Shown: positions 25,180-61,450, numbered from the stretch's first letter. The stretch: 64,000 nucleotides of DNA from Lepidodermella squamata (GCA_047495785.1 JBLDXI010000026.1:1302001-1366000), one strand, 5' to 3'. The notes: generated by a model from the letters alone, not told the origin. Made by a program: numbers and translations.

Positions 25180-26378
25180 ATGGCTTCAAGTTTTTTGCAA
25201 GAATGTTACGGACTACCGGAAGGCGCTGACTCGGCAATCAACCAGTCTTGGGTTTGCAGTGGCAATGATTCCGAATGCCACTTCCTGTACTTTCAACAGT
25301 TCAACCGGCCGATTCACTGCGTGTACGGCGAGGCCAGCCTGATGACGATCGTCGCAATGCTAGGAGTGCCGGCTAATATTCTAGCTGCAAAAAGCTTTTC
25401 GAAAGCTAAACTCGAGCTGTTCGTGCTCATGATCGCCCTGTCTTGCTTGAATATACTCTCGACGCTGGTCAGCCTCGTGAAAAGCGTTCAAAACGTTTTC
25501 ACGGAAAATTGGCCACTCGAAAATTTCGGTTGTGTATTTTTCGTAATATTCTTTGCCTTCTCCATTCCTGTTCAGGTAAAATTTGAAATTAAATTATTTT
25601 CGAAGTTTTATTGTTCCATTTTTAGAGTTGGATCATGGTTCTAATCAGCTTCGAAAGGCTAACTTCAGTTTCCTCACGAGTGATGATAGCCAAAGTCGCG
25701 AAATATTCGCGAATTCGAAAAATCTCACTAACCCTAGGCTCAACGGTTTTAGTCAACATTTTACTGACCATTCCCGTGGCTTTCGTCACCAGCATTCAGT
25801 ATTCCTATATCGATGGCAGGCGCATCAACTATTGCACAATGGATCTATGGGCTATTTTCCCCAACATTTGGGCTCAAATCAGCTACACAATTTTGTCATT
25901 CGTTTTACCGCTCATTATAATTGCTGTGAATAATCTGTAAGTTCCTCATTATTTGTTACATGATTTATTTTACGAATTTTATTTCAGGGTGATATGGATT
26001 AAGGTACACAACACTGCTAGGTCTCTAACTAGAGCTTTAACAGTTCGCCGGCAGAGGGAAATGACGTTAGCGAAGGTGATGTTCGGAACTGTTTTGTGGT
26101 TCTCGGTTTGCACAATCCCAATTCACATCGTCCTTTTTCTAATCCGGTTTCAATACAAGTCCGAATCGAAATCAATTCAATCATCCGTGTTCTGGGCTGC
26201 TAACCTGATGGCTAATATTCGAGCTGCAGTGAATCCGATATTATTGAGCATTTTTATTTGGAAGCGACGTGTTCGTCGCAGTTCTCCGACAACCGGTGAC
26301 GGAGGTACACTGAGCAACAATTCGAAATCTTCTTACCATCAAGATGGCCCGTTAGTCACTTGCGAAGTGCAAGTTTGA
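25180..26378 (+). CDS. Rhodopsin-class GPCR, FFAR4/GPR120-like (paralog 1, 3 exons)
   Basis: Seven hydrophobic segments; FLYFQQFNRP N-terminal motif, FTENWPLENFGC, SFERL, CTIP in TM6, VNPIL in TM7. Confidence 0.8.
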
Positions 26379-26448
26379 TAGATATTTATTGATTAATAAA
26401 TTCCCGAGTGACTCCTTCTCCGTATTTATTATCACGACTGACGGAAGT

Positions 26449-28056
26449 TCAAATACCTAAACCGAGTCCTACGCTCCACTTATCTTCTTCAGCTCGAATT
26501 TTCAGGAAAGCTCTAGCAGCAGCGCGGACATTTTCGTTGTACAATGTCGGCTCTTCGAACGCGGCGAAATGACCCCCTGACGGCATGTCAGCGTAATGAG
26601 CCAGTCGCTTGAAGCTTCGTCGCAGAACCTGGATAGTGTTTCAAGTTGAAATTAGAACTTTTTTCAATATATGACTTGTTTTTTACATTTTTGTGAACGC
26701 AAAACGCCTCGGCTGGGTAACACGCGGCGGCAGTAGGAACTTCGATGTGCGGGATCGACAGCCATTCAAGCAGATTAGAGCGAGCGTTTTCCCTGTGAAT
26801 AAATTGTCACGAGTTGATGTAAATAAAACAAATTAGTCGCAACGTACTTGTAGAATCGAAGAGCTGGCGTAGCTTGATTACCGATCCAGAAAATCATGAT
26901 ATTAGTTAGGAGTTCATCGTTGCCGAGCCCTTTCCCGGATTTAAACTGAACGTGATGTGACCAGGTTGCGAATTTTTCTAGATAATAGCCAGCAAGTGCA
27001 GCCGGGCTATCAGATAGACCGAATCCTAGCGTCTCAGGTTTCGTGGACTGGAAAAATTAATTTAAATTATTAGCCAAAACAATTCGAAAAATTCCAACCT
27101 GCTCATGGAAATAGCCAGTTTCCTCAAGTAACCACAAGGCATGGCTCGGTTTGAATTTATTATCAGGCTTCTCGTCCTGTTCCAAGAAAAACGAAGGGAA
27201 AGCAGCAGCCCCGACCACGTGTAAAAGGTCCATTGGAGTCCCAAGCACAGGTACTGCGAAGTTGGAATGGTAGCCGATAACCTTATCCGGGTACATGTGG
27301 GTTAGGACAGTTCCAATCAGGGTTCCCCAATCGCCGCCTTGGTAGATGAACTTATCGTAGCCGAGACGAGCCATTAGTGCTTGGAAAACCTCGGCAGCTG
27401 CCATGCAATTGAACCCAGCCTTAGTCGGAGCTTCGGAGAATCCATACCCGGGAATCGAGGGTGCTACAACATCGAAAGACAACCCGTTGTTATTAGCAGT
27501 AAGGAGAGGAATAGCCTTGTAGAATTCAACAATTGAACCAGGCCAGCCGTGGACTAGCAAGAGAGGAACCCTGAGAACAGTTCAACATCAAAGGTAAAAT
27601 TAAGATAGTTGATGACAAATAGAACCTAGTTTTAGCAGAAGAATCTCCCTTAATGTGCAAAAAATGAACGTTCAAGCCATGAATGACAGTCTGAAATTGC
27701 GGTAGGGAGTTCAGTTGAGCTTCAGCTTTTCGCCAATCATAAGAATCTCGCCAATACTTGATGACTTCAGCCAGTTTCTGAGAAGGCAGGCCGTACTCGT
27801 AACCAATTTCTTGGAAGGTAGGTGCCGGCTGTTTCCAGCTGTCGAGGCGTTTTTTAAGTTCAGCCAAAACTTCATCGGAGACTTTAACACTGAAAGGTTT
27901 GATTTCCGTGTTCTTTGAATCCGATTTGCCCCAGACCTGAGGTTGACCGCGCTTGTAGGTCTTCAGAGGATCAGGGAACAACCGAATATTAAGAACCGCG
28001 TACGATACGATTCCGATCAAAGCCGTGACAACTGCGAAAGTAGCTAAACGACCCAT
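26449..28056 (-). CDS. Microsomal-type epoxide hydrolase EH1 (5 exons)
   Basis: N-terminal anchor, EHN domain (YWRDSYDWRKAE), HGWPGS, GGDWG, TKPETLG, RFYK, CYPAE, GGHFAAFEEP. Confidence 0.93.
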
Positions 28057-28813: not shown

Positions 28814-29952
28814 ATGTTCGAAGCTTGCTACATATCGACCTCGCCTTCTGCTGTGAATAAATCATGGCTTTGCGATTTTAACAGTAGCAGGTGTAATTTT
28901 CTTTATTTCCAGCAACTGGACCGACCTTCAGCTTGTTCCATGATCGAAACAATTTGGTCACTAGCTATTTTTATGGTGACGATACCTGTCAACGTAGTCG
29001 CGGCAAAAAGTTTCCGAAAAAGCAAGTATGATCTTTACATCCTTATGTCATTCTTGGCCCTCGGCGACATTTTGCTGGCGGCTCTTGTTCTTACTAAAAA
29101 CATTTTGAGCGCAATCAGTTCGTCATGGCTGCTCGGCAATTTCGGCTGTAACGTGTTTTTCTGGCTTTCCGCATGGCTTATCATTCTGCCCGCTTGGACT
29201 TTAGACCTGATCGGAATAGAGCGAAGATTGGCGATGACTTCAAGTCGAACAAATGGCATGAGAAGCGCTCATACCGCCAGAGTTTTCATTTTTATTTCAG
29301 CCGTAGTTATAATCAGTGGCCTCTACTTGTTCAGCCATAGCTACTTTGGTCTCGTCCTGATATCAACAAATGACATGGAAATAGCGCCTATGTTACCTGA
29401 TCAAGTCGAAACCTTTCAGACTTGTACGATGTCTGTGAATGGAGACCTCCCGCCCTATCTCGTCGAGGGCATTTTCACCGCGGCCACATTAGTCATCCCT
29501 GTCTTCATCAATATCTTAAATTATACGTGAGTTTCCATGTCTAATTTTCCGAGCGAGCTCAATAATTTCGTGTAATTAGATCGATTTGGATCAGGGCGAA
29601 AAACGCCTCTTCGGTTCTAGTTTCTCACCCTAGCCGTGATTTTAACCTAGGAATCTTGATCTTCACTGGCATTCTGGTCTTCACGGTTTGCACGATACCT
29701 TGCCATGCGGCTATTATGACTGTAGCTTACCAGCGATCTAGCCCAGGTTACGCGAAGAAAACCATGGAATCGTCGACATTTTGGGTCGCTTACTGCTGCA
29801 TTTTATTCCGAGGAATATTCAATCCTTTAATTTCGAGCTTTTTTAACCTGAAAAGACGCCGTCGCCTGAGAAGCCAATCTTCTGGAAGTCACTTGCATCG
29901 CAATCAAACCGCACTAACGGCTATTTCTAAAAACACGGAAAATTCAGCATGA
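28814..29952 (+). CDS. Rhodopsin-class GPCR, FFAR4-like (paralog 2, 2 exons)
   Basis: FLYFQQLDRP, IETIWSLAIF, WLLGNFGC, IERR, CTIP, FNPLI. Confidence 0.8.
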
Positions 29953-30818: not shown

Positions 30819-32006
30819 ATGTCAATATTTGACGAGCTATCTTCATGCTATTCTTTTTCCGAGAATCAAACTTCGGCAATCAACGAATCTTGGATCTGCA
30901 TCAACCAAAACGAATCCGATTGCTATTTCCTCTACTATCAACAGTTTGGAAGGCCAAAGGTGACAGCTTTAATAATATCCTCCTTAACTAAATTGTTAAA
31001 ATTTTAGATATGCCATGGCGTTGAGTCAGTTGTAGCAGTTCTAATGTTCGCGCTATGCGTCCCGGCAAATGCGATATCGACTTACAGTTTTTACCAGAGC
31101 AAAGTTCGATTGGAGCTGCTGCTGCTTATCGCTCTTCTAGCAATTTGCAACTGCGTGATGACGCTACTTGGAGCTTTCCAAAGCATTCTAAGGACTTTCA
31201 CCGACAATTGGATCTTGGGCAAAATCGGCTGCATCGCATTTATCAGCTCTTTCTGGCTCTTGATAGTCGTACCCGCCTGGATGTGGACCTTGGTCAGCTT
31301 CGAACGCAGATTTTCGGTTGTTCTGCCTTCTAAAAAGCCGATACCTCAGGCTCAGAACAGCAGATTCAAGTCAACAATAGCTGCACTGATTATCATTGTT
31401 CTATTAAGTGTTGCCCTTATCTGCTACATGCTTTTCGCCCTTAAAATAGCCGACACGCATGATGTTTACGTTGATCGATACAAAAACGGCGAAGAGCCTG
31501 TCACAGTTTGCGCAGTGATGGATCTCGGGAGCGGATCATATTTGGTTGTTGAGATTCTCTTCACATTTCTGACTTTAATCCTACCTGCTTTAATCAACAC
31601 TGTCAACTATTCGTAAGCGAAAACATTAGAAAAAGTCTCCTTAATCTTTCAAATTTATTTTAGAAAAATTTGGCTCGTAGTTCGCCGTAGTTCGATGCGA
31701 ATTCGAGGCGGCAAACGTAAGGAGGTGACCATTGCCTACTTTCTGGGAGCAACTATCGCGCTGTTTGTGATATGCACTCTGCCGATTCATGCCGCCCAGG
31801 CGCGGATAGCTTACGATCGATATCATTCGAAAACAATGCAAGCGTCAATTTACTGGCTTTCGAAATTTCCACTCTACCTTCGGGCGACGATTAACCCGTG
31901 GATTCTCAGCTATTTCGTGCGTAAGCGACAGAATCTGTCGACAACGGCTAGTTTGGTAGAAAACAGGAGCGATCCTAGAGTTAATGAACTCCTTAGTACT
32001 TCTTGA
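30819..32006 (+). CDS. Rhodopsin-class GPCR, FFAR4-like (paralog 3, 3 exons)
   Basis: FLYYQQFGRP, FTDNWILGKIGC, SFERR, CTLP, INPWILSY. Confidence 0.8.
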
Positions 32007-32629: not shown

Positions 32630-34043
32630 ATGGGTTTCATGAAAACAATTCTTTCGCTTCTGGTTCTAGCAATAGGTGTTTTAGCAGCCTACCGTTTCTA
32701 CGGCCCCAAACCAGAACCAGACCTTGATCGTTTCAAATTACCTGAACCGATACAATGGGGCGAATCCAACAATGTCGATATTGCTATCAAGCCATTCGTG
32801 GTCAACATTTCAAAGGATGTTATCGACGACGTGAAGCGACGAGTTGCCGCTTACAAGTTTGTCCGAGCTCTTGACGGAGCTGGTTATGATTACGGCATGT
32901 CATTCGACGCCCTAACATCGGTGGTGAAATTCTGGCAAGAAAGGTATGACTGGTCCAAAGCAGAAGCCAAGTTGAACTCCCTGCCGCAGTTTCAGACCGT
33001 GATCCATGGAATAAACCTCCATTTTATTCATGTCAAAGCTGTTGTAAAGAACGATCAAAATGTCAAAAGGATTCCGTTGTTGATGGTACATGGGTGGCCA
33101 GGTTCAGTTCTGGAATTCTACCAGGCTATACCTCATCTGCTTGAACCGAAAGACGGAGTAGTGTTCGATATAGTCGCGCCGTCGATTCCAGGCTATGGTT
33201 TCTCTGAAGCACCGACGAAGCAAGGCTGCGGACCCCTCGCAGTCGCTCAAATGTTGGGCGAATTGATGAAAAGACTTGGTTACAACAAATACGTCTACCA
33301 AGGTGGTGATTGGGGTGCAATGATTGGAAATATCCACGCAAGGATGTTCCCCGAGAATGTAATCGGATACCATTCGAACTTCGTAACGGCTCCGGCTACT
33401 ACAAAAATAGATTTGTTCAGATTTATTTCGGCGACAGTCATTCCAAGCACGTATCTCTTTGGCGATGATGTCCATAAAGTCAGCAAGGAAAAGTTTAATT
33501 GGCTGCTTGGCGAATTCGCTTATGCCTTTGAGCAAATGACGAAGCCAGATACGGTGGGGGCAGCTCTTTCTGACACACCGGTCGGCTTGGCCGCTTATAT
33601 TCTAGAGAAATTCGCAACATGGGCGGAACACGTTGAGTTCAAGGACGGAAAAGGCATTACGAACGAAGATATGATTACAAATGTGATGGTCTACTGGGTT
33701 TCTGGGCATGCAACATCCTCACTCCGATTTTACCGGTAAAATATATTTATCGCATTTCCGAAATTCTAATTCGTTTAATTATTGCAGAGAAATGGCTAAA
33801 TCTTTAAAAGAGACCGATTCTTGGTTGAGACATCCCTACGAAATTCCGACTGCCGTGGCTTGCTATCCCGGGGAGCTAATGTGCTCTCCAAAATCCTTGC
33901 TCAGCTACGAAATGCCTCGTCTAGTTCATTATGTCGATATGCCTTCTGGAGGACATTTCGCGGCTTTTGAAGAGCCAACACTGTTTTCTGAGGACCTTCG
34001 TAAAGCTACCTTGGCTTTCATCAAGGCCGATGAGCACAAGTAA
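32630..34043 (+). CDS. Epoxide hydrolase EH2 (2 exons)
   Basis: HGWPGS, GGDWG, TKPDTVG, RFYR, CYPGE, GGHFAAFEEP. Confidence 0.95.
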
Positions 34044-34179
34044 CCGATTTGCCACGGCATGATAAATGAATCAAAATAAATGAATGCTAATTACTAATCC
34101 TATATATCCTCTATCAAAACTAGGGCCTCTCTGAGGGCTCGGGGTGGTTATAGATGGGCGAAGCCACCCGAAAGTACTA

Positions 34180-34356
34180 CAGTAAGTAATCGCCATAGTG
34201 CACTTTCACGGGGGACAAGAAAAAGGTGTACCTAAGCGAAAAGTGTACCCTTGCGAGTCAAAATTAGCTTGTTAACTCATAATTGGGACCGGCCAAAACG
34301 TGTACTATGACGAATAAGTGCACCTTAACGGAGTGTACTATGGCGAGGACTCACTG
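34180..34356. mobile_element. Tc1/mariner-type MITE
   Basis: Imperfect TIRs CAGTAAGTAATCGCCATAGTGCAC / GTGTACTATGGCGAGGACTCACTG, with TA on both sides. Confidence 0.75.
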
Positions 34357-34809
34357 TACCAGATATTTAGATTTTCTCGTATGCACGTCATATCTAGAGC
34401 AGCCTCCGACATGAAAAACCCTGATGTCCTTTTTTCAATATTCAAAATCTGATTCCGGCGACGAGGAAAAAATTGATGAATGCCTGATATTTCTTAATTG
34501 GAAAGAAAATGTATGTCCCACGCTACAATAACATTGATTGATTTCGCAGTATGCATGAAGTGCCATTGTGAGACATCATATATTACCAACATAGATATTA
34601 GGCTATCAATGTGTGGCGGAATAATTGAAGTCGGTAGATTTATTGAAAATTAACGCCTTAATTACGCCTTAGGACTTGGGACATAAATGAGCTACAGCTG
34701 AGCTTTCTAACTTTTTCTAAAAACGGATGAATGGCTCTTAAATAAATAAATAAATAGGAGACCTCATCGAACTAGGTGGCTAGATTCGGTAGAAAGAAGT
34801 CTAAGAAGA

Positions 34810-34960
34810 GTGGGTCCTATAGCCGAAAATATAATGAGGAAGAAAGCTGACGGGTCCCATGGCAGACCTCGTAAAAATGGTAGTAATATAACTGAAATTA
34901 TCGAAACAACTGCACTAGATCGAGACGAATGGCGTAAAATAGTAGAGACTTCAGGAGATT
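34810..34960 (+). mobile_element. Degenerate 3' end of an RTE-like LINE
   Basis: GRPRK...TALDRDEWRKIV resembles the RTE ORF2 C-terminus. Confidence 0.45.
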
Positions 34961-37294: not shown

Positions 37295-37930
37295 CAGAGG
37301 ATTCGCCACCGCATGAAAAAGGAAAGAAAATAAATGAATGATAATTGACCAATTCTGTTTTTCTCTTAAAAACGATGAAGCCTCTCTCAGGGTGATTATC
37401 AGGGTAATAACCAGAGCTCAGCGTCATTATTGATGAGTTTAGAGCCACCAAGTTTCTCCAAAGCGTACCGCCTGAAATGAAAGCATTTCCTTGCCGTTCA
37501 TTGCTCAGGTTTGGATCACCTTATCTTGCTCAAAGTTGAATCAAATTCATAATCGAGGAGATGCAAAAAGGCTTCTCGACCTTTCCTTTTTGCACGTCCT
37601 GGAACCATCTAGTTACTATCATTACATGTTTTCTAGAGATTGTAAATTCCAAAATTTTTGACCGGTATAACAGCCGGAATAATGCAATGAAATGCCTCGG
37701 CGTGTTTATCCTTTCATTCTCTAATGAGCCAAAGCGTAAAAAAACAGACCAATAGTACTCCATTCATAAATTTTTTCGTTTAATTTGACCCCTACGTAAC
37801 GACAAAAACGAGGCATGCTCCGTGAAGAAAGCGTTTTTACAAAATTTGCCTTTAAATATTATCTAAATCAACCTACAAGGCTGGGTGTAACGCATCATAA
37901 TTTCTGACTATACTTCAAACGTTGGGTATT

Positions 37931-39730: not shown

Positions 39731-39740
39731 AAATGACGTA

Positions 39741-43975: not shown

Positions 43976-44090
43976 AGCCCTGGCGAGAAAAACGAAAATA
44001 ATGTAATCAAAAAATGATTGTCAATTAAAATAATCTCAAAAATCATGATAAAATAATTTCAATTATAACCGGATAAAAAATTCAAATATT

Positions 44091-48700: not shown

Positions 48701-51700
48701 GAAGGATGAACACGATGCATTCGCTAACAAGTTTCTTTCCCATCTCTTACAACGTCCTCCATGATTGGACGATTGAAAGGGCAAATAGTACTACTGCGAG
48801 TGTGCAACATTGACCACGTCTGCAAACATGCCATTGGAACATTGGCTTATCGGAACAAAGAACTCATGCCGGAGGAGGACGCGAACATGTTCCAGAAAGT
48901 CGAAAAGAAGCGCCACATTGGTGGGCACGAGCTACCAATTCGGCCTTGAACAAAGAAAAAACGAGGCCGATTTGTACGATGCATCTGACCTAGCCTAGCC
49001 AAAGCTGTTGAATTCGACATGCAACTGAACCGGCAGCTAAGCGTAGCTACCGAAAGCTGTTGAGTCAGCTGTGCGAGGACGCAAAGCCCCTTAGGCCCAT
49101 TAACCGAGAAAAAGTAGGAAAATCTCAGGGCAGGATGAAATTAGAATCGAGGTGCTCGGGGCACTTGAAGAGACAGGAATTGATTGGCTACACAACTTCT
49201 TTAATAAGATATGGATTGAAAATATATTTAGAAATGATATTTTGATTTTATTGCTAGTTCCAATACCGAAAAGGAGACACCAAAAATCCAGCAACTACCA
49301 ATGAATCAGCATAAAATTAGCGCTGTGGCCAAATGTTACGCAAGAATTCTCGAAAGGAAATTACGCGCGAGGGCGAAGAAAATACTAGAAGATAACCAGC
49401 GCGGCTTCATGGAGCAGAAATGACGCAGAAATAGGAGAATTTACGTCTATGTTGAAATAAATTCTCGAGAAACTCATTGTTGAAGCTTGTCAGACTCTAG
49501 GGTTGAAAATAAACGAGCCCAAAACTAATACGTAACAGAAATAAAATCAGTATCCTTGTCAAGATCCTTATCAGCGAGCTGATCTGTCCTTTCTAGGTGA
49601 ATCGACATGATATTATTAAGGAAGTAGAAAAAGATCATGGTGGCAAAGGACCTCATCAACGAGATATTTCGAAATGTCAATGATTGGAAATGTCTTGAAA
49701 GCCTCAACTTGAAAACTTCGCATCGCGAACTTGTCCGAATCCAGTTACCGACTCTCAATTTTTCCGATTATCAAAAAACCCTAAAATTAACGAAAATAAA
49801 ATAATGTTATCAGACTCTTTGGAGCCGATATTGCTCTATGGTCTATGGTGCGCCTGCCGGGTTCTGCCTTCCCCCTTCAGCCTTCAGCCGCCTTGTGGAC
49901 CTAGAAGCCTGTTGAGTCTTCCTCATAAAATCCACCCTATTGATGTCATCGCATTTGTCTGAGTCACAGTGATCGACCTCATAATAATTTGAAAAGGCGC
50001 GAGAATTCAGGTATAAGGTTTGACGACGAATAACTAGAGTTTTATCGTCGAATTTGCATGCAATTTGCATTCAAAATGAATAATACAATTTCGCCCCAAT
50101 TGCTCACTTTTTGCAGGCCTTGGCAGCTATTTTTCGCACGCCTGGCTTGATGGTATCTACTCTAAATCAGCAATCACCCTTTGCTCCGATTTACTCGGCG
50201 GGTTTATACCGAAACTTGCAGCCAGCCGATATTTGCACACCTGGTGCTTCTTCGCATTCGCAAGTACCGAATTTCCCGTTCTTACCGCCGCAACCTGCAA
50301 CTCAACAGCCTCAACCACCAAGATTGCTACAATCTCAGCCTCCGAATTAAACCTAAACGACGCGCTAAAACATCGAAGCCAAAACTACCCGCCAGCGAAC
50401 CGAAGGAGACACTGCCGATACCGAAGTCGAAACTGAAAAAGACGTCGAGGCGCCTCTCGGACTAGCTTCAGAAAACACTCCTCAGCCAATATGTACTTGT
50501 CTAACTTGGCTTTAAAGTCCTCAACTTTTTCGAAAAACATTCAAATGAATAATTTATCGGCTACTTTTACCTAATCTACGTGGCATAAGTTATCGCGCCT
50601 CGAGCGCCGCGAGGCGGATGGTTGTTAAAATAAAATCTCGATATGCCAGCAGAAAAAATAATTTCAAACTGGAATTTTTATAATCGCAACTTACTTGTAG
50701 TAACGAGCAGCAGACGTAGCGTGGTTCGAAAACCAATGCAACAAGACATTAGTGATCAGGTCATCATTCGAAATCCCCTTGCCAGCCTGGCTGCCTTTGA
50801 ACTCGGCATTCTCCGAATATTTCACGTATTTCTCAACGATCCAGGCCGCCAAACCGACCGGGCTGTCAGACAATGCGACTCCCAACGTATCCGGCTTGGT
50901 CGCTTGAATGTGGAAATATCCGGTCTCTTCCAACAGATTTGACCATTTGACGTCGCTAAGTTTCGAAGCGTCCTTCTCTCCAACGACCAATTTCGGGGCA
51001 ATTAAGGCGGCGGTTGTGTGAGTAGACTCGACAAAACTGCCGAAAGGCAGCATGGCACCAATGAAATGGCTACCAATCACGCTCTCCGGGTACATTCGGA
51101 TCATCAAAGCGCCGATACCTGACCCCCAATCACCTCCCTGGAAAATGAATTTTTCGTAGCCGAGACGTTTCATGAGTGTGTGGAAAATCTGGGTAGTAGC
51201 TAGGATGCCGAAACCGGGTTTAGTTGGGGCTTCTGAGAGCGCGAATCCGGGAATCGAAGGGGCAATCACGTCGAAGGCAACACCATTCTTATCGGGAGTC
51301 GTTAAAAATGGGATGGCACGATAGAATTCGGCGACAGTGCCAGGCCAGCCATGAACCATTAGAATAGGGACCCTATAGAAATTTCAAAAATATTCGTTTT
51401 TGGAACAATTTTTCAGCGATAAAACCAACTTTTTCGAAGCTTTTGCATCGGCCTTAGCGTGGATGAAATGGACCTTTAACCCTTGGATAACGGTCGTAAA
51501 TTGAGGCAGAGAGTTGAGATTGGCCTCGGCTTTGGCCCAGTCGTACTTTTCACGCCAATATTTGACCAAATTGTCCAAATATTCACCCGCTAAGCCGTAG
51601 TCATAGCCAACCCCCTTCAATGGCTCGTGACGGCGCCAGTTATCCAAACGTTCCTTCAAATCTTGGAGAGCTCGCTGATCCACCTTAACAGTGAAGGGGG

Positions 51701-51866
51701 TTATCGAATTGTCTGGTTTCGAGTTGCCCCATACGGTTGAATCTGGATACGCAGTGGGGACGACCTTTTCCTTGCCACAAAAGAAATAGGAAGCCACGCC
51801 GACCAAAACGGCGACTAATAAAAATGTCTTCATGTAAGAACGAGATTCAGATTTTTCCGGTGACAT
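45762..51866 (-). CDS. Epoxide hydrolase EH8 (3 exons; last intron ~4.7 kb containing TE debris)
   Basis: Exons 1-2 at 51866-50693 have no nearby exon 3; an orphan exon 3 at ~46012-45762 (CYPHD, GGHFPAIEEP) has a phase-compatible acceptor. Confidence 0.8.
46599..47652 (+). pseudogene. Fragmented ORFs ending in a GIY-YIG-like nuclease motif
   Basis: SGLYGF...AYLGESSDLNKRFNAH fits the GIY/YIG/R/H pattern; reading frame is broken. Confidence 0.45.
48400..48950 (+). mobile_element. Degenerate MULE (Mutator-like) transposase remnant
   Basis: WYEGA...TNNGVEAKNNAMK followed by SWIM-like CKHAIG; stops and frameshifts. Confidence 0.65.
49320..49520 (+). mobile_element. LINE reverse transcriptase fragment
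   Basis: Manual translation AKCYARILERKLRARAKKILEDNQRGF resembles the start of a non-LTR RT domain. Confidence 0.5.
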
Positions 51867-52052
51867 GCCCTAAAAATTGCAAATATTTCCAAGTTTCATC
51901 TTTGATGTTTAATCACAGCTCAAATATCGAGTCATATAATTGAACAATGACATGAATAAATAGGATTGCAAAATAGAAGCTTGATCCACCTAAATCTAGA
52001 GTTCTCTTCCACTTCATTTTGCAGGCACAACAACTTATTGATGGGTGAATGT

Positions 52053-53668
52053 TTAATTGCTTTTCTTCTTCTCATCCTCAGCACGCGCAGCTAAGATGGC
52101 AGTAACACCTTTGCGGAAATCAGCAGCGAAAATCTCGGGAACTTCCATCGCAGCGAAATGGCCGCCATGGGCGATGTCTTCGTAATGAACGAGGCGACGA
52201 ATCGAGTTCTTGGCAAGGGCCTTCGGGGCGCAGTTGATGTCGTTCGGGTAGCAACCGAGAGCTGTTGGGACGGTGATTGGCTTTTTCGCCCAACCATTGA
52301 ATTCATTGTGAAGCTGAACATGCTCTCTGGAAAATTAAAAAAAATTTAAATTTAAAAAATTAAAAATTTAAAAATTATAATTAATTAATTTATTATAATT
52401 TAATAAAAAATCAAGTATGTATTTAAAAATTGCCACTTAATTTTTAAAGCTCAATTCCTTTCAAGTTTGTTTCTTCAAATTTGATTACTCAGCTTGAAAC
52501 ATAAATTTGCAAAAAAGTAAGAACTCACTTGTAAAATCGGCCAGCAGAGGTGATGCGGTTCTTCAACCAGTACACCATGACGTTGGTAAGGAGGTCATCA
52601 TTGGAAATGCCGCCTTTATCTCCCTTGAATTCAGCTTGCTCCGTTGCGAGTTCAAACTTTTCGGCAACCCAAGCAAGAAAACCAACCGGGCTGTCAGAAA
52701 GCCCGACGCCTAGCGTATCAGGCTTGGTAGCTTGAATGTGGAAATAGCCGGATTCTTCGAGTAGCATTTCCTTGAATTTGATATTTCCAAGCCTGGCAGC
52801 GTCTTCGGCGTCCAGAACAAGGGACGGGGCAATTAAAGCAGCGGCTAGGTGAAGCTTTTCGCAGGTTGTCGCAATGCTAACCGGGAACATATTGAGATGA
52901 ATGCCAATAACGCTATCAGGGTCGATTCTAGCAACCATATTGCCAATGGCCGAACCCCAATCTCCGCCTTGATAGATGAATTTTTCATAGCCGAGACGTT
53001 TCATCAAAATGTGGTACATCTGAGCAGCGGCGATTGGGCTGAAACCGGGTTTGACTGGAGCCTCGGAAAATGCAAAACCAGGAATTGAAGGGGCAACAAT
53101 ATCAAACGCAACTCCATCAGGTCCAGGCTTCGTCAGAAGAGGAATAATGCGGTAGAATTCGACCACTGAACCCGGCCATCCGTGGCTAATTAGAAGCGGG
53201 ATCCTTTGAACAAAGTAAAAATAGCAATTTTTAACAAAATTTCATCATATCTCACTTCTTGGTTGCCTTTGGATCAGCTTTCACGTGAATAAAGTGAAGT
53301 CTGAGTCCTTGAATAACGGTGGTGAATTGCGGGAATTGGTTCACGCGAGACTCGAATTTCGCAAAATCGAATTTTTCACGCCAGTATTTGACCAAATTAT
53401 CAAGTCGCTCGCCGGCGAAACCGTAGAACCTACCGACGCCTTGCAGAGGTTCGTGACGGCGCCACGATGCCAGACGGCTTTTAAGGTCTTCAATATCTTT
53501 CGGGTCAACTTTAAACGTGAACGGCTTGATTATGACATCAGGCCCCTTTTGATTGCCCCAAATTACGTCATCGGGGTGTAAGAACGTTTTCCCGTCATCA
53601 TTGCAACACCGGGTATAGAAGTAGGCTCCAGCCGCTACCAAAGTTCCCAAAATTATTAAACCCTTCAT
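52053..53668 (-). CDS. Epoxide hydrolase EH9 (3 exons)
   Basis: GGDWG, EESGYFHIQ, RFYK, CYPND, GGHF; ends KKKSN. Confidence 0.93.
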
Positions 53669-53799
53669 TTCTAGAAAAAAAATTAATAAATAAAAATCCA
53701 AAGTATTCTTTGATTGACGCAGATCAACAAGAACGTCAAAAAATCTTCGAAAAATAAATAGTTAAATGAACACCAGGATATTGCCGAAAATAACAGAAT

Positions 53800-55269
53800 T
53801 CATAATTCTGATTTTTTCACTTCTTCGGCTCGAGCTGAAAGAATTGAAGAGACAGCTTTGCGAAAATCTGCGGCAAAAATTTCAGGGACCTCCAAAGCAG
53901 CAAAATGGCCGCCGTGCGCGATGTCTTCGTAGTGAACCAGTCGGGGCATTGAGTTTTTAAGAAGACCCTTCGGGGCGCACCTAATTTCTTTCGGGTAGCA
54001 GGCAACAGCAGTTGGTATGGTGATCGGTTTCTTTGACCAAATATTATATTCATGACTCAGCTGTATACTTTCCCTGATTTTAAAAAATTACTAATAATTG
54101 ATCATCTCAAAATAAAAAATCTAACTTGTAAAATCGCATCGAAGAGGTAACGTGGTTGTTCAGCCAATAAACCGTTAGTCCAGTAAGGAATGCATCGTTA
54201 GAGATACCACCCTTGTCTCCCTTTAACTCAGCTTGCTCGGCTAAAATTTCCACTTTATCGGCAACCCAAGCCAGAAATCCAACAGGGCTGTCGGTGAGGG
54301 CAACGCCTAAAGTATCTGGCTTTGTTCCTTGAACGTGGAAGTAGCCCGATTCGTCCAGCAACCACTGCTTGAATGGGAAAGCAGCCAGACGGGCAGCGTC
54401 CTCGGAGTCTAGGACTAATGACGGGGCGATTAGAGCGGCGGCTAATTTGAGTTTATCCCAGGTATTAGCCAGAGGGAATATAGCCATGTTAAGGTGGATG
54501 CCAATTAGATTTTCCGGGAAGATCCGAGCGAAAACGCTACCAATAGCCGCGCCCCAGTCGCCAGCTTGGAATATGTATTTTTCGTAGCCGAGCCGCTTCA
54601 TCAGGGTATGGTAGACCTGAGCAGCAGCGATGGCGTTGAAACCAGGCTTGGCAGGGGCCTCGGAAATTCCGAAACCAGGAATCGTTGGAGCGATGATATC
54701 GAAAGCAACGCCGTCAGGCCCAGGTTTTGTGAGTAGGGGAATAATACGGTAGAATTCCAAAGAAGAACTAGGCCAACCATGGCTGATAATAAGAGGGATC
54801 CTTCGAATAATATTTAAATAAGCTGGGTAATTAGCTGGGTAATGAAAGGAAAAACTGACTTTTTAGTAGCTTTAGGATCAGCTTTCACGTGGACGAAATG
54901 AAGACGAAGGCCTTGAATGACGGTGGTGAATTGAGGAAACTGGTTGACATGCGACTCCAATTTCGTGAAGTCATACTTCTCACGCCAATATTTGACCGCA
55001 TTTTCGAGCCGCTCGCCGGTAAAACCATAGGAACTCCCAACGCCACTCATCGGCTCATGGCGCCGCCAAGAATTCAATCGTCGCTTCAGATCATCAATGT
55101 CCTTGGGGTCAGCTTTGAAAGTGAATGGTTTGATTGAAGCGTCTTCTTTTGAGTTGCCCCAGAAAGTGTCTTCAGGGTATAAAAACAATTTCTCGTCTTT
55201 ATGGCAGCATCGAGTGGCTAAATAGACACCAATTGCCGCCAATAAGCCGAGAATAATAAGTCCTTTCAT
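53800..55269 (-). CDS. Epoxide hydrolase EH10 (3 exons)
   Basis: HGWPSS, AGDWG, ESGYFHVQ, CYPKE, GGHF; ends KKSEL. Confidence 0.92.
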
Positions 55270-55485
55270 CTTAAAAATCTGAATAATCGAGAAAAGATGG
55301 ATATAGTTTAGTAATGAAATTAAAATAATGTTTTGTAATGAAAGAGAGAGTCACTTTACTCGGTCAGAATCACAGATCACAATAACGAGACACTACAACC
55401 GATGAGAATATAAATTGGCTAAACTTTCCATTTCAGCTTGTCTATTCCGGAATATATGATTTATGATTTCACATCAGTGATTCGG

Positions 55486-56220
55486 TTATTGTTTAGCTTT
55501 CTTTTCTTCTTCGGCGCGAGCTGCAAGGATGGAGTTAACAGCTTTGCGGAAATCTTTGGCGAACAAGTCAGGGACCTCCATTGCAGCAAAATGGCCACCG
55601 TGGGGCAGATCTTCGTAATGAACCAAATTTGGCATTGCAATTTTCACCAAAGCCTTTGGAGTGCAGGAGATCTCGTTCGGGTAGCATGAAACACCAGACG
55701 GCACAGTTATTTGCTTCTTGGCCCAAGCATCAAACTCATTGTGAAGTTGGACATGCTCCCTGAAAATCAAAATTAGTCAAAGAAAAGAGATAAACCAATC
55801 AAATTCAAACTTTTTAGTGGCTATTGGATCAGCTTTGGCATGGATGAAATGCACCTTCAGACCTTGAATAACCGTAGTAAACTGCGGAAACTGGTTAACG
55901 CGAGACTCGAAGTTCGCAAAATCAAACTTTTCCCGCCAATATTTGACAAAGTTGTCCAACCGCTCACCGGCAAATCCGTAAGATCGGCCAACACCTGGAA
56001 GCGGTTCGTGGCGGCGCCATGAATTCAATCGGCGTTTCAGATCTTCGATGTCCTTGGGGTCAGCTTTGAAAGTGAATGGTTTGATGGAAGCGTCCTCCTT
56101 AGAGCTGCCCCAAACTGTATCATCCGGGTACAAAAATAGTTTCTCTTCATCATGGCAGCACCGAGTAGCTAAATAAGCACCAAAGGCAACGAGAGCTCCG
56201 ATTATAACATAACCTTTCAT
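55486..56220 (-). CDS. EH11: epoxide hydrolase lacking the central catalytic exon (in-frame 227-aa product); mini-protein or pseudogene
   Basis: Exon 1 (56220-55811) joins exon 3 (55759-55486) across a 51-nt GT-AG intron, both phase 2; no HGWP or GDWG. Confidence 0.8.
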
Positions 56221-56426
56221 TGTAAGAAATCTATAACTTGAATAAAAAGATATAACAAATCAGGCCACCAAAAAAAACAGGGAATATTGTTCAAAAAGGA
56301 CGGATTGGCTTGATTTGAAAATAACTTTCGTTATGCGAACCAACCAGCAAATATAAAAAACTATTATGCTTAGTCCGAGAAAATAGGCAAGATGTCAGAA
56401 GTTAGCTGTTTCTCTTGTTAGTCTCA

Positions 56427-58197
56427 TCAATGCTTCTTTTCTTCTTCGGCGCGAGCAGCAAGGATAGAGTTAACAGCTTTGCGGAAGTCTTTGGCGAACA
56501 ATTCTGGCACCTCCATGGCAGCAAAATGGCCTCCGTGGGGCAGATCTTCGTAGTGAACCAATTTAGGAAGCGAAATTTGCACCAAAGCTTTCGGGGCGCA
56601 GGCGATCTCGTTCGGGTAGCATGATACACCGGAAGGAACAGTCACTTGCTTCTTGGCCCAAGCATCAAACTTGTCAGAGAGTTGTATATCCTCCCTAAAA
56701 ATTGATAGGATCAAGTAGAATCCAAGTTGAAGTATCATTTGAGCAAATTAATCAAACTAATAAACTCTGGCCATATTTCAGTGACGTATAACCTAATGTA
56801 GCTTTTCTAGCAGAGGGCCCCGGTTTTTTTCAATGCAGTAAATCGCAGAAATTGGGGTGGCATTATCAAATCCAATTAATAATCGGAGTTTCAGAATATT
56901 CTGGACTTTCGGTTCTGGAACTGTCTTATCGCATCGAAACGCTGTTTTTAACTTCTACGGTGGTGTGAATGTCGAGCAGACCTTATAGAGATGATGTCGA
57001 TATAATCAGAAAGCGTTCAGAAGATCATTCTAACATTTTCCCAAAACAAGGATTCTCTTACTTGTAAAATCGACCGGCCGATGTTATGTGATTCGTCAAC
57101 CAATAAAGCATGACATTCGTCAGGAGATCTTCATTCGGAACTCCACTTTTGTCGCCCATCAACTCAGCTTTCCCCGACCAAGTTTCAAATTTCTCCGTAA
57201 TCCATGATAGAAGACCGACCGGACTGTCCGTTAGGCCTACACCGAGCGTGTCTGGCTTAGTGGCTTGCAAATGAAAATAGCCGGATTCTTCAAGCATGAT
57301 TTCCGTGAATTTGAAATTTGTTAATTTGGGCGCATCCTTTGCGCCGAGGACCAAGGTGAGGCAATCAAGGCAGCGGCAAGATAAAGTTTCTCACGCGTGC
57401 TAGCGACAGAGAACGGGAAAAAGTTGACGTGGAGTCCAATCAAACTTTCCGGGTACATTCTAGCAACCAAGTTTCCAATGATTGAGCCCCAATCACCGCC
57501 CTGATAAATGAACTTTTCGTAACCGAGACGCTTCATTAGAGCGTGAAACACTTGAGCGGTAGCGATTGGGCTGAAACCGGGTTTGACCGGAGCTTCGGAG
57601 AATGCAAAACCGGGAATAGAAGGGGCAACGATGTCAAACGCAACCCCATCAGATCCAGGTGTCGTGAGAAGTGGAATAAGGCGGTAAAATTCAACAACCG
57701 ACCCAGGCCACCCGTGGCTAATTAGAACAGGAATCCTACAAAAAATAAAAGGAATTCAAAGAAGGCAAGTAAAACCGCTGGGAAATCAACTTTTTAGTGG
57801 CTTTCGGGTCAGCTTTGGCGTGGATGAAGTGTAACTTCAGGCCTTGAATGACCGTTGTGAACTGCGGAAACTGGTTTACGCGAGACTCGAATTTTGCGAA
57901 ATCAAACTTTTCACGCCAATATTTGACCAAGTTGTCCAACCGCTCACCGGCAAATCCGTAAGATCGGCCAACACCTGGAAGTGGTTCATGGCGGCGCCAT
58001 GAGGCTAATCTGCGTTTCAGATCTTCAATGTCCTTAGGGTCAGCTTTGAAAGTGAATGGTTTGATTGAAGCGTCCTCCTTAGAATTGCCCCACACTGTAT
58101 CATCCGGGTACAAAAACAGCTTCTCCTCATGACAACACCTAGTGGCTAAATAGGCCCCAAGGGCTACCAGAATTCCAATAATTACGAGACCTTTCAT
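56427..58197 (-). pseudogene. Epoxide hydrolase EH12 with a 1-nt frameshift in exon 2 (pseudogene or assembly error)
   Basis: LAAALIA and LVLGAKDA lie in different frames at ~57355-57360, whereas EH9 reads LAAALIAPSLVLDAED. Confidence 0.75.
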
Positions 58198-59091
58198 TGT
58201 AAGAAATCTGTTTAAGAGAAATTAATTGAGTTATGAAATCAATTTGACGGTTAAAATTGCCAATGTATAAGTGGATATTTTTTGCCAGTTGTCATGGCCA
58301 AGGAACCAGAACGAATAGAGGAAATATTTTGTGAACTTTCTTGCTAATTTGATCGGCTTCCAGCTCTCTCATACCTTTGAAAATGAGAATTCGCATGAGA
58401 TGTTAGGAAACAGCAAATGGATTTATTAGATTAATCTTAAGGCGGCTTAATTCGCTGCTCGACCCTAAAATAGAATTTCCAGAATATGTCCACGTAAATG
58501 AGGGTTGGAATTCGTGGCTTGAAATAAAGACCCTGATAATTGACAAAAAATGAAAGCTGCGGTAGGACAAATATAGCACCGGCAAAAAATCGTGTATAGT
58601 ATTTCTGCAAGCATTCACTCTCACCTTTTTTCATATATTCCAGGTATATTATTGTATACACACTGCCTGAGGCTCTTTTATGAAGCAGGATAAAAAAATA
58701 CGGTTCTCTTTTTTACCTCAGCAAATAATTCCACTGTCCGGATAGATTTTGACCATCAGAGTTAAAAAAATGAAGATTAACTCTAGGACAGAAAACAAAG
58801 ATAAGATAAAAATCATTGGTCATTTTTATTGCTTGTTCCTTCTCTCGCTCTCATTTTGTCGCCAGTCAGACAAAAATTACACATTCATTTCATTCAAATC
58901 AAATCATAACAATAAATGGCCTAAGCATTATTATTATTATTAGCAGTTATATCAGATCACCGATTGCATAGAAGGTTCAGTACATGGACTAGAGAATTCA
59001 TTACATATATTATATTGATGGCACGGGGTTTTTCACACGTAGCACTTGAATGTTATGAGGCGCAATAATTGACTGATTACAGCTGCGAAAT

Positions 59092-61450
59092 TCAACGCTT
59101 GCCTGCTTCCTTCTTCTGCTCTTGCTTCGGAGCCTGAGTTGTCGTGCTAGGCTTCTGAGTCGTGGTAGTAGTGGTGGTGGTGGTTGGCTTCTGGGTAGTT
59201 GTGGTAGCCTTGGTAGTGGTGGTCGTGGGTTTCGGGGTGGTAGTTGTGGTTGGCTTGGGGGTAGTTGTAGTTGTAGTAGTCGGCTTCTGAGTAGTCGTAG
59301 TTGTCGGTTTTTGCGTGGTAGTGGTCGTCGGCTTTTGGGTCGTAGTTGTAGTCGTAGGTTTCTGAGTTGTGGTAGTCGTAGGCTTAGGGGTGGTGGTAGT
59401 TGGTTTAGCAGTCGTGGTAGTAGTCGTAGTAGGCTTAGCAGTGGTTGTGGCTGTGGTCGGTTTCGCCGTAGTAGTGGTAGTTGGCTTCTGGGTAGTCGTG
59501 GTCGTAGTAGTCGTAGTTGGTTTCTGGGTGGTGGTTGTTGTGGTAGTTGTTGGTTTCTGAGTAGTAGTTGTAGTGGTCTGTTTCGCAGTGCTAGTCGTCG
59601 CAGTTTTCACCGGTTCCTCAGCCACCTTCTTGCCCTTAGCAGTCACTTCCTTCTCCCGAGCCTCGACAAAAGCCGCAACAGCATTTCGAACATCCTGCGC
59701 GAAGAAAGCCGGCTCTTCAAACGCAGCGAAATGGCCACCGTGTGGGCTGTCAACGTAGTGGACCAGTTTAGGCATTTGGAATTTCAGCAACGCTTTCGGG
59801 GTGCAGAGAAGTTCGAATGGGTAGCAGGTGTAACCAGCCGGGATTTTGATCGGATGAGCCATCCACGCTTCAAAATCAGCCCTGGTCTGAGTGTTCTCCC
59901 TGAAAATTAATCAATCAATTGAAAAACTTGAAAAATCCTCCTTAATTAATGAAAAATTTCAGAAATGACAAAACTATACACCGCAGCGAGGGGTTTTGCT
60001 TAAATGATTCAGGGAAACAAAGGTTGGCAGGATGATTCCATATTTTCCTGCAAATTTTGAAAATTTTCTATTTTTTCATCATTCTTGCAGTCTAGCGGCT
60101 ATTCGCAGTTGACAGGTCACCGTTTTTCAAGCTAATAAGCACATAATCCTCCAGAAGTACGGACGGGCGGAAGGACGGAACACGCCCACAACAGGGTGGA
60201 TTCCCCGCCATCCAGGAGGTTGCGATTAATTATAAAATTCCGCGAGTAAGGTTCAGCATGAATTTTGAAGATGAGTAAACAAACCCTGGAGATATAATCA
60301 AACTTACTTATAAAATCTAGCCGCTGATGTAGCACTGCTAGTGACCCAGTAAAGCATGACGTTGGTCAGGATATCATCGTTGGACAGTCCCTTGCCAGCA
60401 GGGCTGCCTTTGAACTCGGCATTCTCCGAAGCCTTGATGAAAAGCTCAAGAAGCCAAGAAGCCAAACCAACCGGGCTATCAGTGAGCGCGACGCCAATCG
60501 TATCAGGCTTAGTCGCCTGGACGTGGTAGAAGCCCAAATCCTCTAGAATTTCGAAAATCGACAACTTTGAAACTTTAGCAGCATCCTGAGGCCCGACGAT
60601 AATTTTCGGCGCGACTAAAGCAGCGGCTAGTTGCAGCTTATCAGCGATAGTGCCCATCGGAATAATCTCAAAATTAAGGTGGACGCCGATAACACTTTCA
60701 GGGAAAAGACGTGCCGCCATATGGCCAATCATAGAGCCCCAATCGCCGCCTTGATACACGAATTTTTCATACCCGAGGCGTTTCATTAGCGTATGGAAGA
60801 CTTGAGCGGCGGCGATTGTGTTGAAGCCAGGCTTGGAAGGAGCCTCAGAAAATGCAAAGCCAGGAATAGACGGCGCAACAACGTCGAACGCAACTCCGTT
60901 TTTATCAGCAGTTGTCAACAATGGAATGACTCGGAGAAATTCAGCAATTGACCCAGGCCAGCCGTGAACCATCAACAGCGGGATTCTAAATTTTCGAGAA
61001 ATTTCAAATATTCCAAATATTCAAATATTTCCCTGATTTTCCTTACTTTTTAGTAGCTTTCGGGTCAGCTTTTGCATGAATAAAGTGAACTTTGAGGCCT
61101 TGAATGACTGTCGTGAAATGAGAAAAGGAGTTGAGGCGAGCTTCCTGCTTGGCCCAATCGTACTTCTCCCGCCAATATTTCACTAGATTATCAAGCTTCT
61201 CGCCGGCGAATCCATACGAATCACCGACATTTTTCAGCGTCTCGTGACGCCGCCAGTGGGCTAGTCTATCTTTCAAATCAATCAGCACTTTTTGATCCAC
61301 CTTAACAGTAAACGGCTTTATCGAGGCATCTTCCTTCGAGTTGCCCCAAATCGTGGTTTCGGGATAGGCGGTTGGATGAGATTTGTTCTTATTGGCAATA
61401 TAAAACGCCAATCCGGCGACCAAAACCGCGAAAATTATAAATTTCTTCAT
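59092..61450 (-). CDS. Epoxide hydrolase EH13 with a C-terminal Thr-rich mucin-like tail (3 exons)
   Basis: HGWPGS, GGDWG, RFYK, CYPFE, GGHF, then ~160 aa of (Q/A/P)KPT(n) repeats in the same ORF. Confidence 0.92.
59130..59600 (-). repeat. Coding Thr-rich degenerate repeat, KPT(4-9) units
   Basis: Runs of ACN codons with varied third positions. Confidence 0.9.

Follow-up and report, generated by a model that had tools for sequence, protein, structure and literature searches.

Among described animal enzymes, the closest counterparts of the hydrolases treated here are those of the EPHX1/JHEH family, in which an N-terminal anchor is followed by an EHN domain and an alpha/beta-hydrolase core. 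In Drosophila, three paralogues of this family (Jheh1-Jheh2-Jheh3) form a tandem cluster tied to the oxidative-stress response (PMC6093896; 10.1101/2020.04.27.063297). For the receptors that accompany the hydrolases, FFAR4 appears to be the nearest characterized relative, although only marginally so. R99 of FFAR4 is the proposed carboxylate anchor (PMC11941992), while F27 lines the pocket, and W277 (W6.48) and Y321 (Y7.53) act in activation of the receptor (PMC13490442).

The locus described below lies in a window of 64,000 nucleotides from Lepidodermella squamata (JBLDXI010000026.1:1302001-1366000). Its epoxide hydrolase (EH) genes share with the EPHX1/JHEH family the same domain architecture and identical catalytic residues, and the paralogues are arranged in tandem, as in Drosophila. 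In contrast to the three genes of the latter cluster, however, the array contains 13 copies from three old subfamilies in 36 kb, and one member (EH13) bears a mucin-like tail. Three GPCR genes are embedded in the same region, and the first-pass annotation had proposed that receptors and enzymes form a co-expanded locus for the perception and processing of epoxy-lipid signals. In our analysis, the locus probably represents two unrelated tandem gene families lying side by side in a very compact genome, rather than a conserved functional module.

Organization of the locus

The order and strands annotated previously (GPCR1, EH1, GPCR2-3, EH2-5, EH6-13) match the gene models exactly, and both family assignments were likewise correct: the GPCR exons contain Pfam 7tm_1 (E values from 1e-7 to 4e-9, with 5.6e-10 for GPCR2), and the EH genes contain EHN and Abhydrolase_1. 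GPCR1 (25180-26378, plus strand) is a spliced model with an intact ORF of 365 aa in three exons (25180-25575, 25626-25936 and 25988-26378), the 7tm_1 match falling on exon 3. It is followed by EH1 (26449-28056, minus strand), a subfamily B gene of five exons encoding 462 aa with the full catalytic set. GPCR2 (28814-29952, plus strand) is a spliced model of two exons (28814-29526 and 29580-29952; 361 aa), and GPCR3 (30819-32006, plus strand) is modelled in three (30819-30959, 31008-31612 and 31664-32006; 362 aa). These two receptor genes occupy the head-to-head gap between subfamilies A and B. The interleaving is tight, with only 70 bp between GPCR1 and EH1, which are positioned tail-to-tail, and 757 bp between the divergent EH1 and GPCR2; such spacings speak against coincidence.

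The remaining hydrolase genes form two blocks. The plus-strand block (32630-42247) consists of four subfamily A gene models of two exons each, namely EH2 (32630-34043), EH3 (35900-37294), EH4 (37931-39730) and EH5 (40834-42247). The minus-strand block (42432-61450) begins with the subfamily C genes EH6 (42432-43975, four exons) and EH7 (44091-45541, three exons), and includes two further intact members of this subfamily, EH9 (52053-53668) and EH10 (53800-55269). Catalytic motifs are present in the models of all four, those of EH10 reading AGDWG and HGWPSS. The other members of the block (EH8 and EH11 to EH13) are considered in the following section.

As annotated, no other recognizable gene type occurs in the 36 kb, apart from ORFs within an insert in EH8 and two copies of a MITE-like element. 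The latter is a palindrome of 243 bp, whose arms are 97% complementary; one copy lies in the intron of EH4 (39141-39383) and the other directly after this gene (39739-39981). An Rfam scan of the whole window yielded zero matches. Outside the cluster, a genuine AGMO fragment is located at 3060-3809 (Pfam AGMP_C, E = 5e-7). Its proximity, to which attention had been drawn, is not meaningful, because about seven unrelated housekeeping genes intervene, including RPL5, POFUT, COPA, aminopeptidase P, an NDUFAF6-like gene and EF-Ts, and the connection was dropped.

The epoxide hydrolase array

Searches by tblastn, using Lingula EPHX1 and EH5 as queries, detected 13 EH loci in the window. The array of 13 copies reported in the first-pass annotation is therefore upheld as a number of loci, of which 11 look intact, whereas EH11 and EH12 are defective. 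In EH2, the EHN domain (PF06441, E = 1.2e-31) is followed by Abhydrolase_1 (E = 9e-17). The EH proteins are 40-48% identical to animal EPHX1/JHEH sequences, and their closest solved structure is the Bombyx JHEH (4QLA, E = 1e-78).

Twelve of the 13 copies have HGWP, the oxyanion-hole motif, as well as the nucleophilic Asp of G-x-D-W-G, the exception being EH11, in which the relevant exon is missing. All 13 have the GGHF His, with Glu or Asp at the aligned acid position. The ring-opening Tyr residues occur in G-Y-F-H and R-F-Y-K/R motifs, with a one-residue shift in EH13. In every copy that contains the core (12/12), HGWP is retained together with the GDWG Asp, the two Tyr residues, the acid residue and the His of GGHF. 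At the N-termini, as read from the models, a hydrophobic stretch of ∼20 residues would constitute a putative single membrane anchor. The full-length proteins are predicted to be catalytically active epoxide-to-diol hydrolases, which may have diversified in substrate range.

Several copies depart from the common pattern. EH11 (55486-56220, minus strand) is a truncated, in-frame stub of 227 aa, in which exon 1 is joined straight to the C-terminal exon, with loss of the ∼225-aa core exon, in which HGWP and the nucleophilic Asp would reside. In EH12 (56427-58197, minus strand), the core exon is disrupted near 57355-57377 by a −1 frameshift, but the copy is otherwise 90% identical to EH11. EH8 (45762-51833, minus strand; exons 51833-51430, 51372-50694 and 46007-45762) reads as intact only when a last intron of 4.7 kb (46008-50693) is spliced out. 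This insert occurs only once in the window, lacks terminal repeats and contains no above-threshold Pfam domain; one of its ORFs (47134-47652) gave a weak, below-threshold match to GIY-YIG (E = 0.046). Finally, EH13 (59092-61450, minus strand) is an intact hydrolase that ends in a mucin-like tail of ∼190 aa (∼59092-59650), which is rich in Thr and Pro and contains tandem repeats.

The EH copies are old and under purifying selection. Their amino-acid identities to one another range from 41 to 85%, and three subfamilies (A, B and C) can be distinguished among them. Even the tandem copies EH2-5, which are 81-85% identical among themselves, show dN/dS values of 0.11-0.17 at dS of 0.57-0.80, and the value for the pair EH11/EH12 is 0.09. 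In the EH tree, the window genes and those of relatives form one clade (SH-aLRT 100), in which each of the three subfamilies includes a relative's gene; the EH1 orthologs P0001 and P0022 are 62% identical to EH1. The flatworm Macrostomum is placed as the sister of this clade, with weak support (SH-aLRT 85). The tree points to a non-arthropod source, and juvenile hormone therefore need not be the substrate of these enzymes.

The cluster would thus be ancient, having reached 13 copies, 11 of them apparently functional, through repeated tandem duplication within three subfamilies, and EH11 and EH12 would have been disabled recently. Many diversified copies are the usual pattern for xenobiotic- or lipid-epoxide-metabolizing "defensome" families, and the array most likely reflects an expansion for detoxification or lipid-epoxide metabolism. 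It is a large but conventional EPHX1/JHEH expansion, whose three-subfamily core arrangement is kept in at least one distant relative, and it should be useful for the study of such metabolism in small invertebrates of a group that has been little sampled.

The receptor family and its resemblance to FFAR4

The three receptors belong to a distinct clade (SH-aLRT 100) of 37 sequences, all of which derive from ENA/Logan contigs. Within it, GPCR1-3 group with P0121 (SH-aLRT 89), an ortholog of GPCR1 (45% identity, shared intron position), and this group is sister (SH-aLRT 90) to P0173 and P0130 of relatives, consistent with the trio having arisen after that split. The three genes are themselves old duplicates (pN about 0.46). 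An AlphaFold2 model of the family member P0124 predicts seven helices and a helix 8 (pLDDT 84.5, pTM 0.84). A homologous-protein search with exon 1 of GPCR2 returned no matches, while that with the family alignment returned 10, with uninformative names; scans of metagenome contigs with the EH2 protein and with the GPCR N-terminal alignment gave no confirmed relatives. Judged by sequence, this is a previously undescribed, lineage-restricted family of putative orphan class-A receptors.

The resemblance to FFAR4 noted in the first-pass annotation holds to the extent that FFAR4 was the best characterized match in three comparisons, but it is faint, at ∼15-20% identity and with margins of 1-5 bits. 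In an HMMER search of 1.84 billion proteins, FFAR4 was the best-scoring of the 20 weaker hits (ranks 21-52) whose names were retrieved (E = 2.4e-5). Against PDB, the full-length family profile scored 87.7 bits with FFAR4 versus 86.5 with CCKAR and KOR, and the TM1-5 profile 63.4 versus 58.7 bits for the next structure; the profile alignment to FFAR4 begins at residue 25. With Foldseek, FFAR4 gave the top TM-score (0.72-0.74).

The motifs singled out earlier do align residue for residue with FFAR4. Both proteins have T-E/D-x-W-x-L/F-G-x-x-x-C in ECL1 and S-x-E-R. The pre-TM1 motif [C/Y]F-x-F-[F/Y] aligns with the FPFF segment of FFAR4, and C-x-F-L-Y-F/Y-Q-Q with Y/R-F-P-F-F, which is a likeness at the level of the motif only. 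The TM1 Glu of the family aligns with E43, and a consensus Arg (Arg2.64) with R99. This Arg is found in most relatives but is absent from GPCR1, GPCR2 and P0121, so that GPCR3 is its sole keeper among the window trio. Since FFAR4 tops the three comparisons and pocket-forming motifs are shared, a lipid ligand is not implausible. In contrast to FFAR4, however, the family lacks W6.48 and Y7.53, having C-[T/Y]-x-P and N-P-x-x-[L/S/I] in place of the respective motifs; most members have Asn for D2.50; and an N-terminal hairpin with a Cys pair and N-glycosylation sites is added. The S-x-E-R sequence, previously described as standing in place of DRY, is the plain E-R-x form of E/DRY, a common variant of that motif.

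Peptide receptors (tachykinin/QRFP-like, GnRHR, TRHR, CCAPR, CCKAR and opioid) follow within a few bits. The profile scores of the CCK-A, kappa-opioid, neuromedin-B/bombesin and tachykinin/QRFP-like receptors lie 1-5 bits from that of FFAR4, the Foldseek E-values of peptide class-A receptors equal or better those of FFAR4, and an ECL2 beta-hairpin and an E/DRY-type motif are likewise common to them and the family. On the other hand, the alignments of these receptors do not begin before TM1 (at profile positions 39-49, versus 29 for FFAR4), and they lack an aligned Arg2.64 or TM1 Glu, unlike the family consensus. The phylogeny sets the family apart from all named GPCRs, with a polytomy in the position of the sister group. 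In the profile scores, FFAR4 leads by 1.2 bits (full length) and 4.7 bits (TM1-5). FFAR4 may be the nearest characterized relative of the family, in which case the family would bear on how FFAR4 arose in evolution.

Linkage of receptors and hydrolases

The single synteny test available for the proposed co-expanded locus argues against it. In a metagenome relative (contigs L012/L011), the EH genes are arranged as C(+) A(-) B(+) B(+), which corresponds to the minus-strand order of the window. The C, A and first B genes lie within 5.5 kb, and A is separated from B by 220 bp with no GPCR between them; these contigs extend for only 4-5.5 kb, and a GPCR may be located just past their ends. Beyond the second B copy, the contig shows only the 33-aa tail of a gene on the opposite strand. 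Conversely, no EH was detected within up to 10 kb of any of the six related GPCR loci of relatives (6/6), the neighbors of which are MFS transporters, GH20, Fringe, Cys-loop channels, sulfotransferases, UBA1 and chitinase. In two closer relatives (the species behind SRR23086389 and SRR21279729), orthologs of GPCR1 and of EH1 are likewise present, on contigs of 1-2.3 kb; the flanks covered by three such contigs (L015-L017, 1.1-2.3 kb) contain no recognizable GPCR or EF-Ts sequence. As far as the contigs of the sampled relative show, the EH cluster predates its association with the GPCRs. A shared lipid-signalling function of receptors and enzymes is not supported, and the two are probably not functionally coupled. 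Rather, three old GPCR paralogues would have entered or adjoined the head-to-head gap between A and B after the split from this relative, and their adjacency to the hydrolases may reflect genome compaction, together with local duplication or rearrangement.

Other readings of the locus were weighed against this one. It is unlikely that the region constitutes a chemosensory or xenobiotic-response island, in which fast-evolving chemoreceptors and degraders of odorants or xenobiotics share a chromatin or regulatory domain (e.g., in the gut or a sensory epithelium) without any specific tie between ligand and enzyme. The GPCR family is indeed large, lineage-restricted, very divergent and dispersed (37 sequences), and it lacks canonical activation residues, as do many chemoreceptor-type expansions; the EH genes show birth-and-death dynamics, with two copies disabled and insertions of TEs and MITEs, and the mucin-like tail of EH13 suggests a lumenal or extracellular site. 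Yet the window contains only three GPCRs, which are old duplicates, their linkage with EHs is absent from the relatives' loci examined, and we know of no chemoreceptor function for this family.

Quite unlikely is the proposal that the GPCRs are FFAR4-like lipid receptors, whose epoxy-lipid ligands are made or destroyed by the adjoining EHs, the linkage having been selected for co-regulation or co-inheritance. The tight interleaving of the two families would fit such an arrangement, as would the rank of FFAR4 among the names examined, PDB matches and Foldseek TM-scores, and the alignments with R99, E43 and the pre-TM1 aromatic segment (PMC13490442; PMC11941992). Against it stand the narrow lead over peptide receptors at such low identity and the polytomy in the tree; the missing Arg of GPCR1 and GPCR2; the lack of W6.48, Y7.53 and mostly D2.50 (PMC13490442); the same EH order in the relative with no GPCR between A and B; and the six related GPCR loci without a nearby EH. 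The EH copies, moreover, look like those of an enzyme family undergoing diversification, and not like one dedicated ligand-processing enzyme. A younger version of this idea, in which distant FFAR4 relatives sense lipid epoxides or the corresponding diols, three of these receptors having joined the expanded EH cluster to form a lineage-specific, locally co-regulated signalling unit, is very unlikely. If the receptors did sense substrates or products of the EHs, the locus would be a rare case in animals of a receptor physically linked to the metabolism of its ligand, but the synteny evidence speaks against a conserved module of this kind.

It is extremely improbable that the array is an over-expanded or mis-joined tandem repeat created during assembly, despite the homopolymer-type frameshift in EH12 and the breaks of relatives' assemblies at the ends of their own EH arrays. 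Collapsed or duplicated assemblies are expected to give near-identical copies, and this explanation was rejected because the EH copies are highly divergent: they differ by 15-59% in protein sequence, and their intron structures, intergenic DNA and insertions are all distinct.

Gene content and order of the locus

Spliced models were made for all genes between 25.1 and 61.5 kb of the window. Their order along it is GPCR1(+), EH1(-), GPCR2(+), GPCR3(+), EH2-5(+) and EH6-13(-), where GPCR1-3 are orphan rhodopsin-type receptors and EH1-13 are epoxide hydrolases of the EPHX1/JHEH type; the gene order and strands of the first-pass annotation are matched exactly. The receptor exons were assigned to Pfam 7tm_1 and the hydrolases to EHN plus Abhydrolase_1. 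Using Lingula EPHX1 and EH5 as queries, tblastn detected 13 EH loci and none further in the window, and pieces of the receptors detected only three GPCR genes. The window is that of a very compact animal genome, with introns of ~46-61 bp bounded by GT...(T)nAG and intergenic steps of 0.1-1 kb. Upstream lie an AGMO fragment, RPL5, a protein O-fucosyltransferase, COPA, aminopeptidase P, an NDUFAF6-like gene and EF-Ts. Given this company, the AGMO fragment, whose proximity had been pointed out, is just one among many unrelated neighbors. No recognizable feature was found at 61.5-64 kb of the window.

The epoxide hydrolase array

Complete reading frames were obtained for 11 EH copies (~443-462 aa, with EH13 at 629 aa), that of EH8 only after removal of a 4.7-kb last intron (46008-50693). 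Each copy begins with a hydrophobic anchor, and all core-bearing copies have kept the HGWP motif, the G-D-W-G nucleophile, both Tyr, the acid residue and the GGHF His. The top database matches were animal EPHX1/JHEH proteins (40-48% identity), and the nearest solved structure was Bombyx JHEH (4QLA, E 1e-78). In EH11, an exon-precise deletion has fused exon 1 straight to the C-terminal exon, such that the core exon with HGWP and the Asp nucleophile is gone and an in-frame product of 227 aa results, while the core exon of EH12 carries a -1 frameshift near 57355-57377. This pair (55486-58197) is 90% identical, with a dN/dS of 0.09 at dS 0.6; the lesions are therefore recent, and both genes were constrained until not long ago.

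Amino-acid identity among the copies ranges from 41 to 85%. For EH2-5, dN/dS was 0.11-0.17 at dS ~0.6-0.8, and synonymous sites were saturated in most of the remaining pairs. These values show the copies to be old and constrained, as is typical of an enzyme family that has persisted and diversified over a long time while losing some of its genes. Neither a recent amplification nor an assembly artefact would leave such a pattern.

A maximum-likelihood tree took in the window hydrolases, four EH genes (relA-relD) from the ENA metagenome contigs L011-L014 and two Logan proteins, all of which formed a single clade (SH-aLRT 100). Subfamily A comprises EH2-5 and relA; subfamily B contains EH1 with its orthologs P0001 and P0022, relB and relC; and subfamily C consists of EH6-13, with relD nested within. 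EH1 and relB have a common C-terminal ending, ...EDKW..GLGI. Since enzymes of this family have been found in tandem clusters before, as in Drosophila Jheh1-3 (PMC6093896; 10.1101/2020.04.27.063297), the array is a large addition to a known type of cluster. Judging by the family to which they belong, their full catalytic sets, the purifying selection on them and the birth-and-death dynamics of the array, the window enzymes most plausibly have a range of epoxides, xenobiotic and/or lipid, as their substrates.

Several copies bear additional features. The EH8 insert (46008-50693) lacks both an identifiable domain and terminal repeats, and it occurs only once in the window; its ORF at 47134-47652 gave a weak, sub-threshold GIY-YIG match (E 0.046), and the insert may be a decayed mobile element. 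A palindromic, MITE-like element of 243 bp, with the terminal repeat TACCGTAGAGCGGTACAATTTTGAACA, occurs in two copies, one of which (39141-39383) enlarges the EH4 intron from ~52 to 453 bp, while the other (39739-39981) lies directly 3' of the EH4 stop codon. EH13 ends in a Thr/Pro-rich, mucin-type tail of ~190 aa (59092-59650, minus strand) with imperfect TTTTTQKP-like repeats. Microsomal-type epoxide hydrolases do not usually carry such a tail, which hints at a lumenal or extracellular orientation of EH13.

The orphan receptors and their likeness to FFAR4

The three receptors are 29-41% identical over aligned pieces. Common to them are an N-terminal S-A-(I/V)-N-x-S-W-x-C ... C-x-F-L-Y-x-Q-Q-x-x-R-P motif with N-glycosylation sites, a TM1 Glu, W-x-L-x-x-x-G-C in ECL1, E-R-x at the DRY position and a conserved intron after TM5. 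For remote searches they were entered exon by exon. HMMER, run exhaustively against 1.84 billion representative proteins, returned only 52 matches at E <= 1e-3, 13 of them at E <= 1e-10; the ten best-scoring matches looked up (nine at E <= 1e-12) were all unnamed proteins assembled from ENA metagenomes or Logan reads. In the tree, the family (37 sequences) stood apart from every named GPCR (SH-aLRT 100). Within it, GPCR1-3 grouped (89) with P0121, a GPCR1 ortholog of identical intron position, as sister (90) to P0173 and P0130/P0180 from relatives. The Cys-pair N-terminal hairpin and post-TM5 intron are shared by family members in the metagenome relatives, such that the family represents a lineage-specific class-A expansion, which appears to be undescribed so far. 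About 25 distinct clusters of the family were observed in these relatives, some in tandem (L005 5494-9363; other ENA loci L001-L009, L018-L019).

The receptors had been called FFAR4-like. Among 20 weaker HMMER matches (ranks 21-52) whose names were looked up, avian FFAR4 scored best (E 2.4e-5), practically level with a tachykinin/QRFP-like receptor (E 2.6e-5), followed by an opsin and then by GnRHR-, TRHR- and CCAP-receptor-like proteins. Against the PDB, the full-length family profile ranked human FFAR4 first (87.7 bits, versus 86.5 for the CCK-A and kappa-opioid receptors). The TM1-5 profile gave FFAR4 63.4 bits versus 58.7 for the next receptor, and only the FFAR4 alignment reached the pre-TM1 segment. 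With an AlphaFold2 model of P0124, a member of the family (pLDDT 84.5), Foldseek E-values were slightly better for many peptide and chemoattractant receptors, and the top TM-scores (0.72-0.74) and top identity (20%) belonged to FFAR4 structures. In HMMER and MAFFT alignments, the TM1 Glu corresponds to FFAR4 E43, a consensus Arg to R99, T-D/E-N-W-x-L-G to W-T-E-A/N-W-L/V-L-G, and the aromatic C-x-F-L-Y-F to F-P-F-F. According to published work, R99 has a role in ligand carboxylate binding (PMC11941992), and the N-terminal F27 of FFAR4 lies in the orthosteric pocket (PMC13490442).

Conversely, identity to FFAR4 is only 15-20%, the Arg aligned with R99 is missing from GPCR1, GPCR2 and P0121, and the FFAR4 activation residues W277(6.48) and Y321(7.53) are not present in the family, in most of which D2.50 is also replaced by Asn. 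The tree, in which FFAR4 was represented by an isoform without TM6-7 (P0144), resolves no sister group. The evidence for FFAR4 likeness is thus more favorable than expected, yet weak: FFAR4 is the best available comparator, and the receptors are at most candidate members of its family and, by the same token, candidate lipid receptors.

A 468-aa receptor from a Logan contig (P0165) clustered with vertebrate FFAR4 (SH-aLRT 96, flagged as a long-branch join) and carries YFTFYGEFHR, the TM1 Glu, TR-ITESWIFGDxxC and DRY. This could be an FFAR4-like receptor from outside the vertebrates, in which case it would help in rooting the FFAR4 question.

Association of receptors and hydrolases

The relative's EH genes are arranged as C(+), A(-), B(+), B(+) inside 5.5 kb. 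Order and orientation are alike in the window, which on its minus strand reads Cx8(+), Ax4(-), GPCR3(-), GPCR2(-), B(+), GPCR1(-). The head-to-head A/B gap measures 220 bp in the relative versus 4.6 kb in the window, where it holds GPCR2 and GPCR3. The relative's contigs end at the array edges, one extending 200 bp more into the tail of an opposite-strand gene without identifiable family. The hydrolase cluster thus appears to predate its association with the receptors, which would have moved into the A/B gap once the lineage of this relative had branched off.

Six GPCR-family loci in related metagenome organisms, including those of P0173 and P0180, the nearest relatives of the window trio, were inspected with up to 10 kb of context per side, and none (0 of 6) had an epoxide hydrolase within it. 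Their respective neighbors were MFS transporters and GH20; a Cys-loop channel and UBA1; a second GPCR, amine oxidase, sulfotransferases and a short-chain dehydrogenase; RING and chitinase genes; ANF-receptor and CUB-trypsin; and a Fringe glycosyltransferase. Two closer organisms have both gene types (EH1 orthologs at 62% and a GPCR1 ortholog at 45% identity), on contigs of only 1-2.3 kb. No additional relatives emerged from scans of JGI metagenomes.

The first-pass annotation had proposed a co-expanded receptor and ligand-processing locus, and had listed absence of the linkage in relatives among the observations that would refute it. That absence is what the sampled relatives display, distant as they are (EH identity 42-58%), and the short A/B gap likewise speaks against co-expansion. 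A receptor and ligand-processing module is accordingly given only an outside chance, which it retains because the FFAR4 signal is consistent, though marginal, and because the GPCR and EH genes are tightly interleaved. The best-supported reading is side-by-side placement, in which an ancient, expanding EPHX1-type cluster and a short tandem run of orphan GPCRs are neighbors in a gene-dense genome.

Most of the EH and GPCR genes are preceded by an acceptor-like tttcag/ttttag located 1-25 nt 5' of the ATG, and EH6-EH13 (42.4-61.5 kb) occupy one strand with gaps of only 115-220 bp. This spacing, together with the acceptor-like sites, resembles spliced-leader trans-splicing and an operon-like organization.
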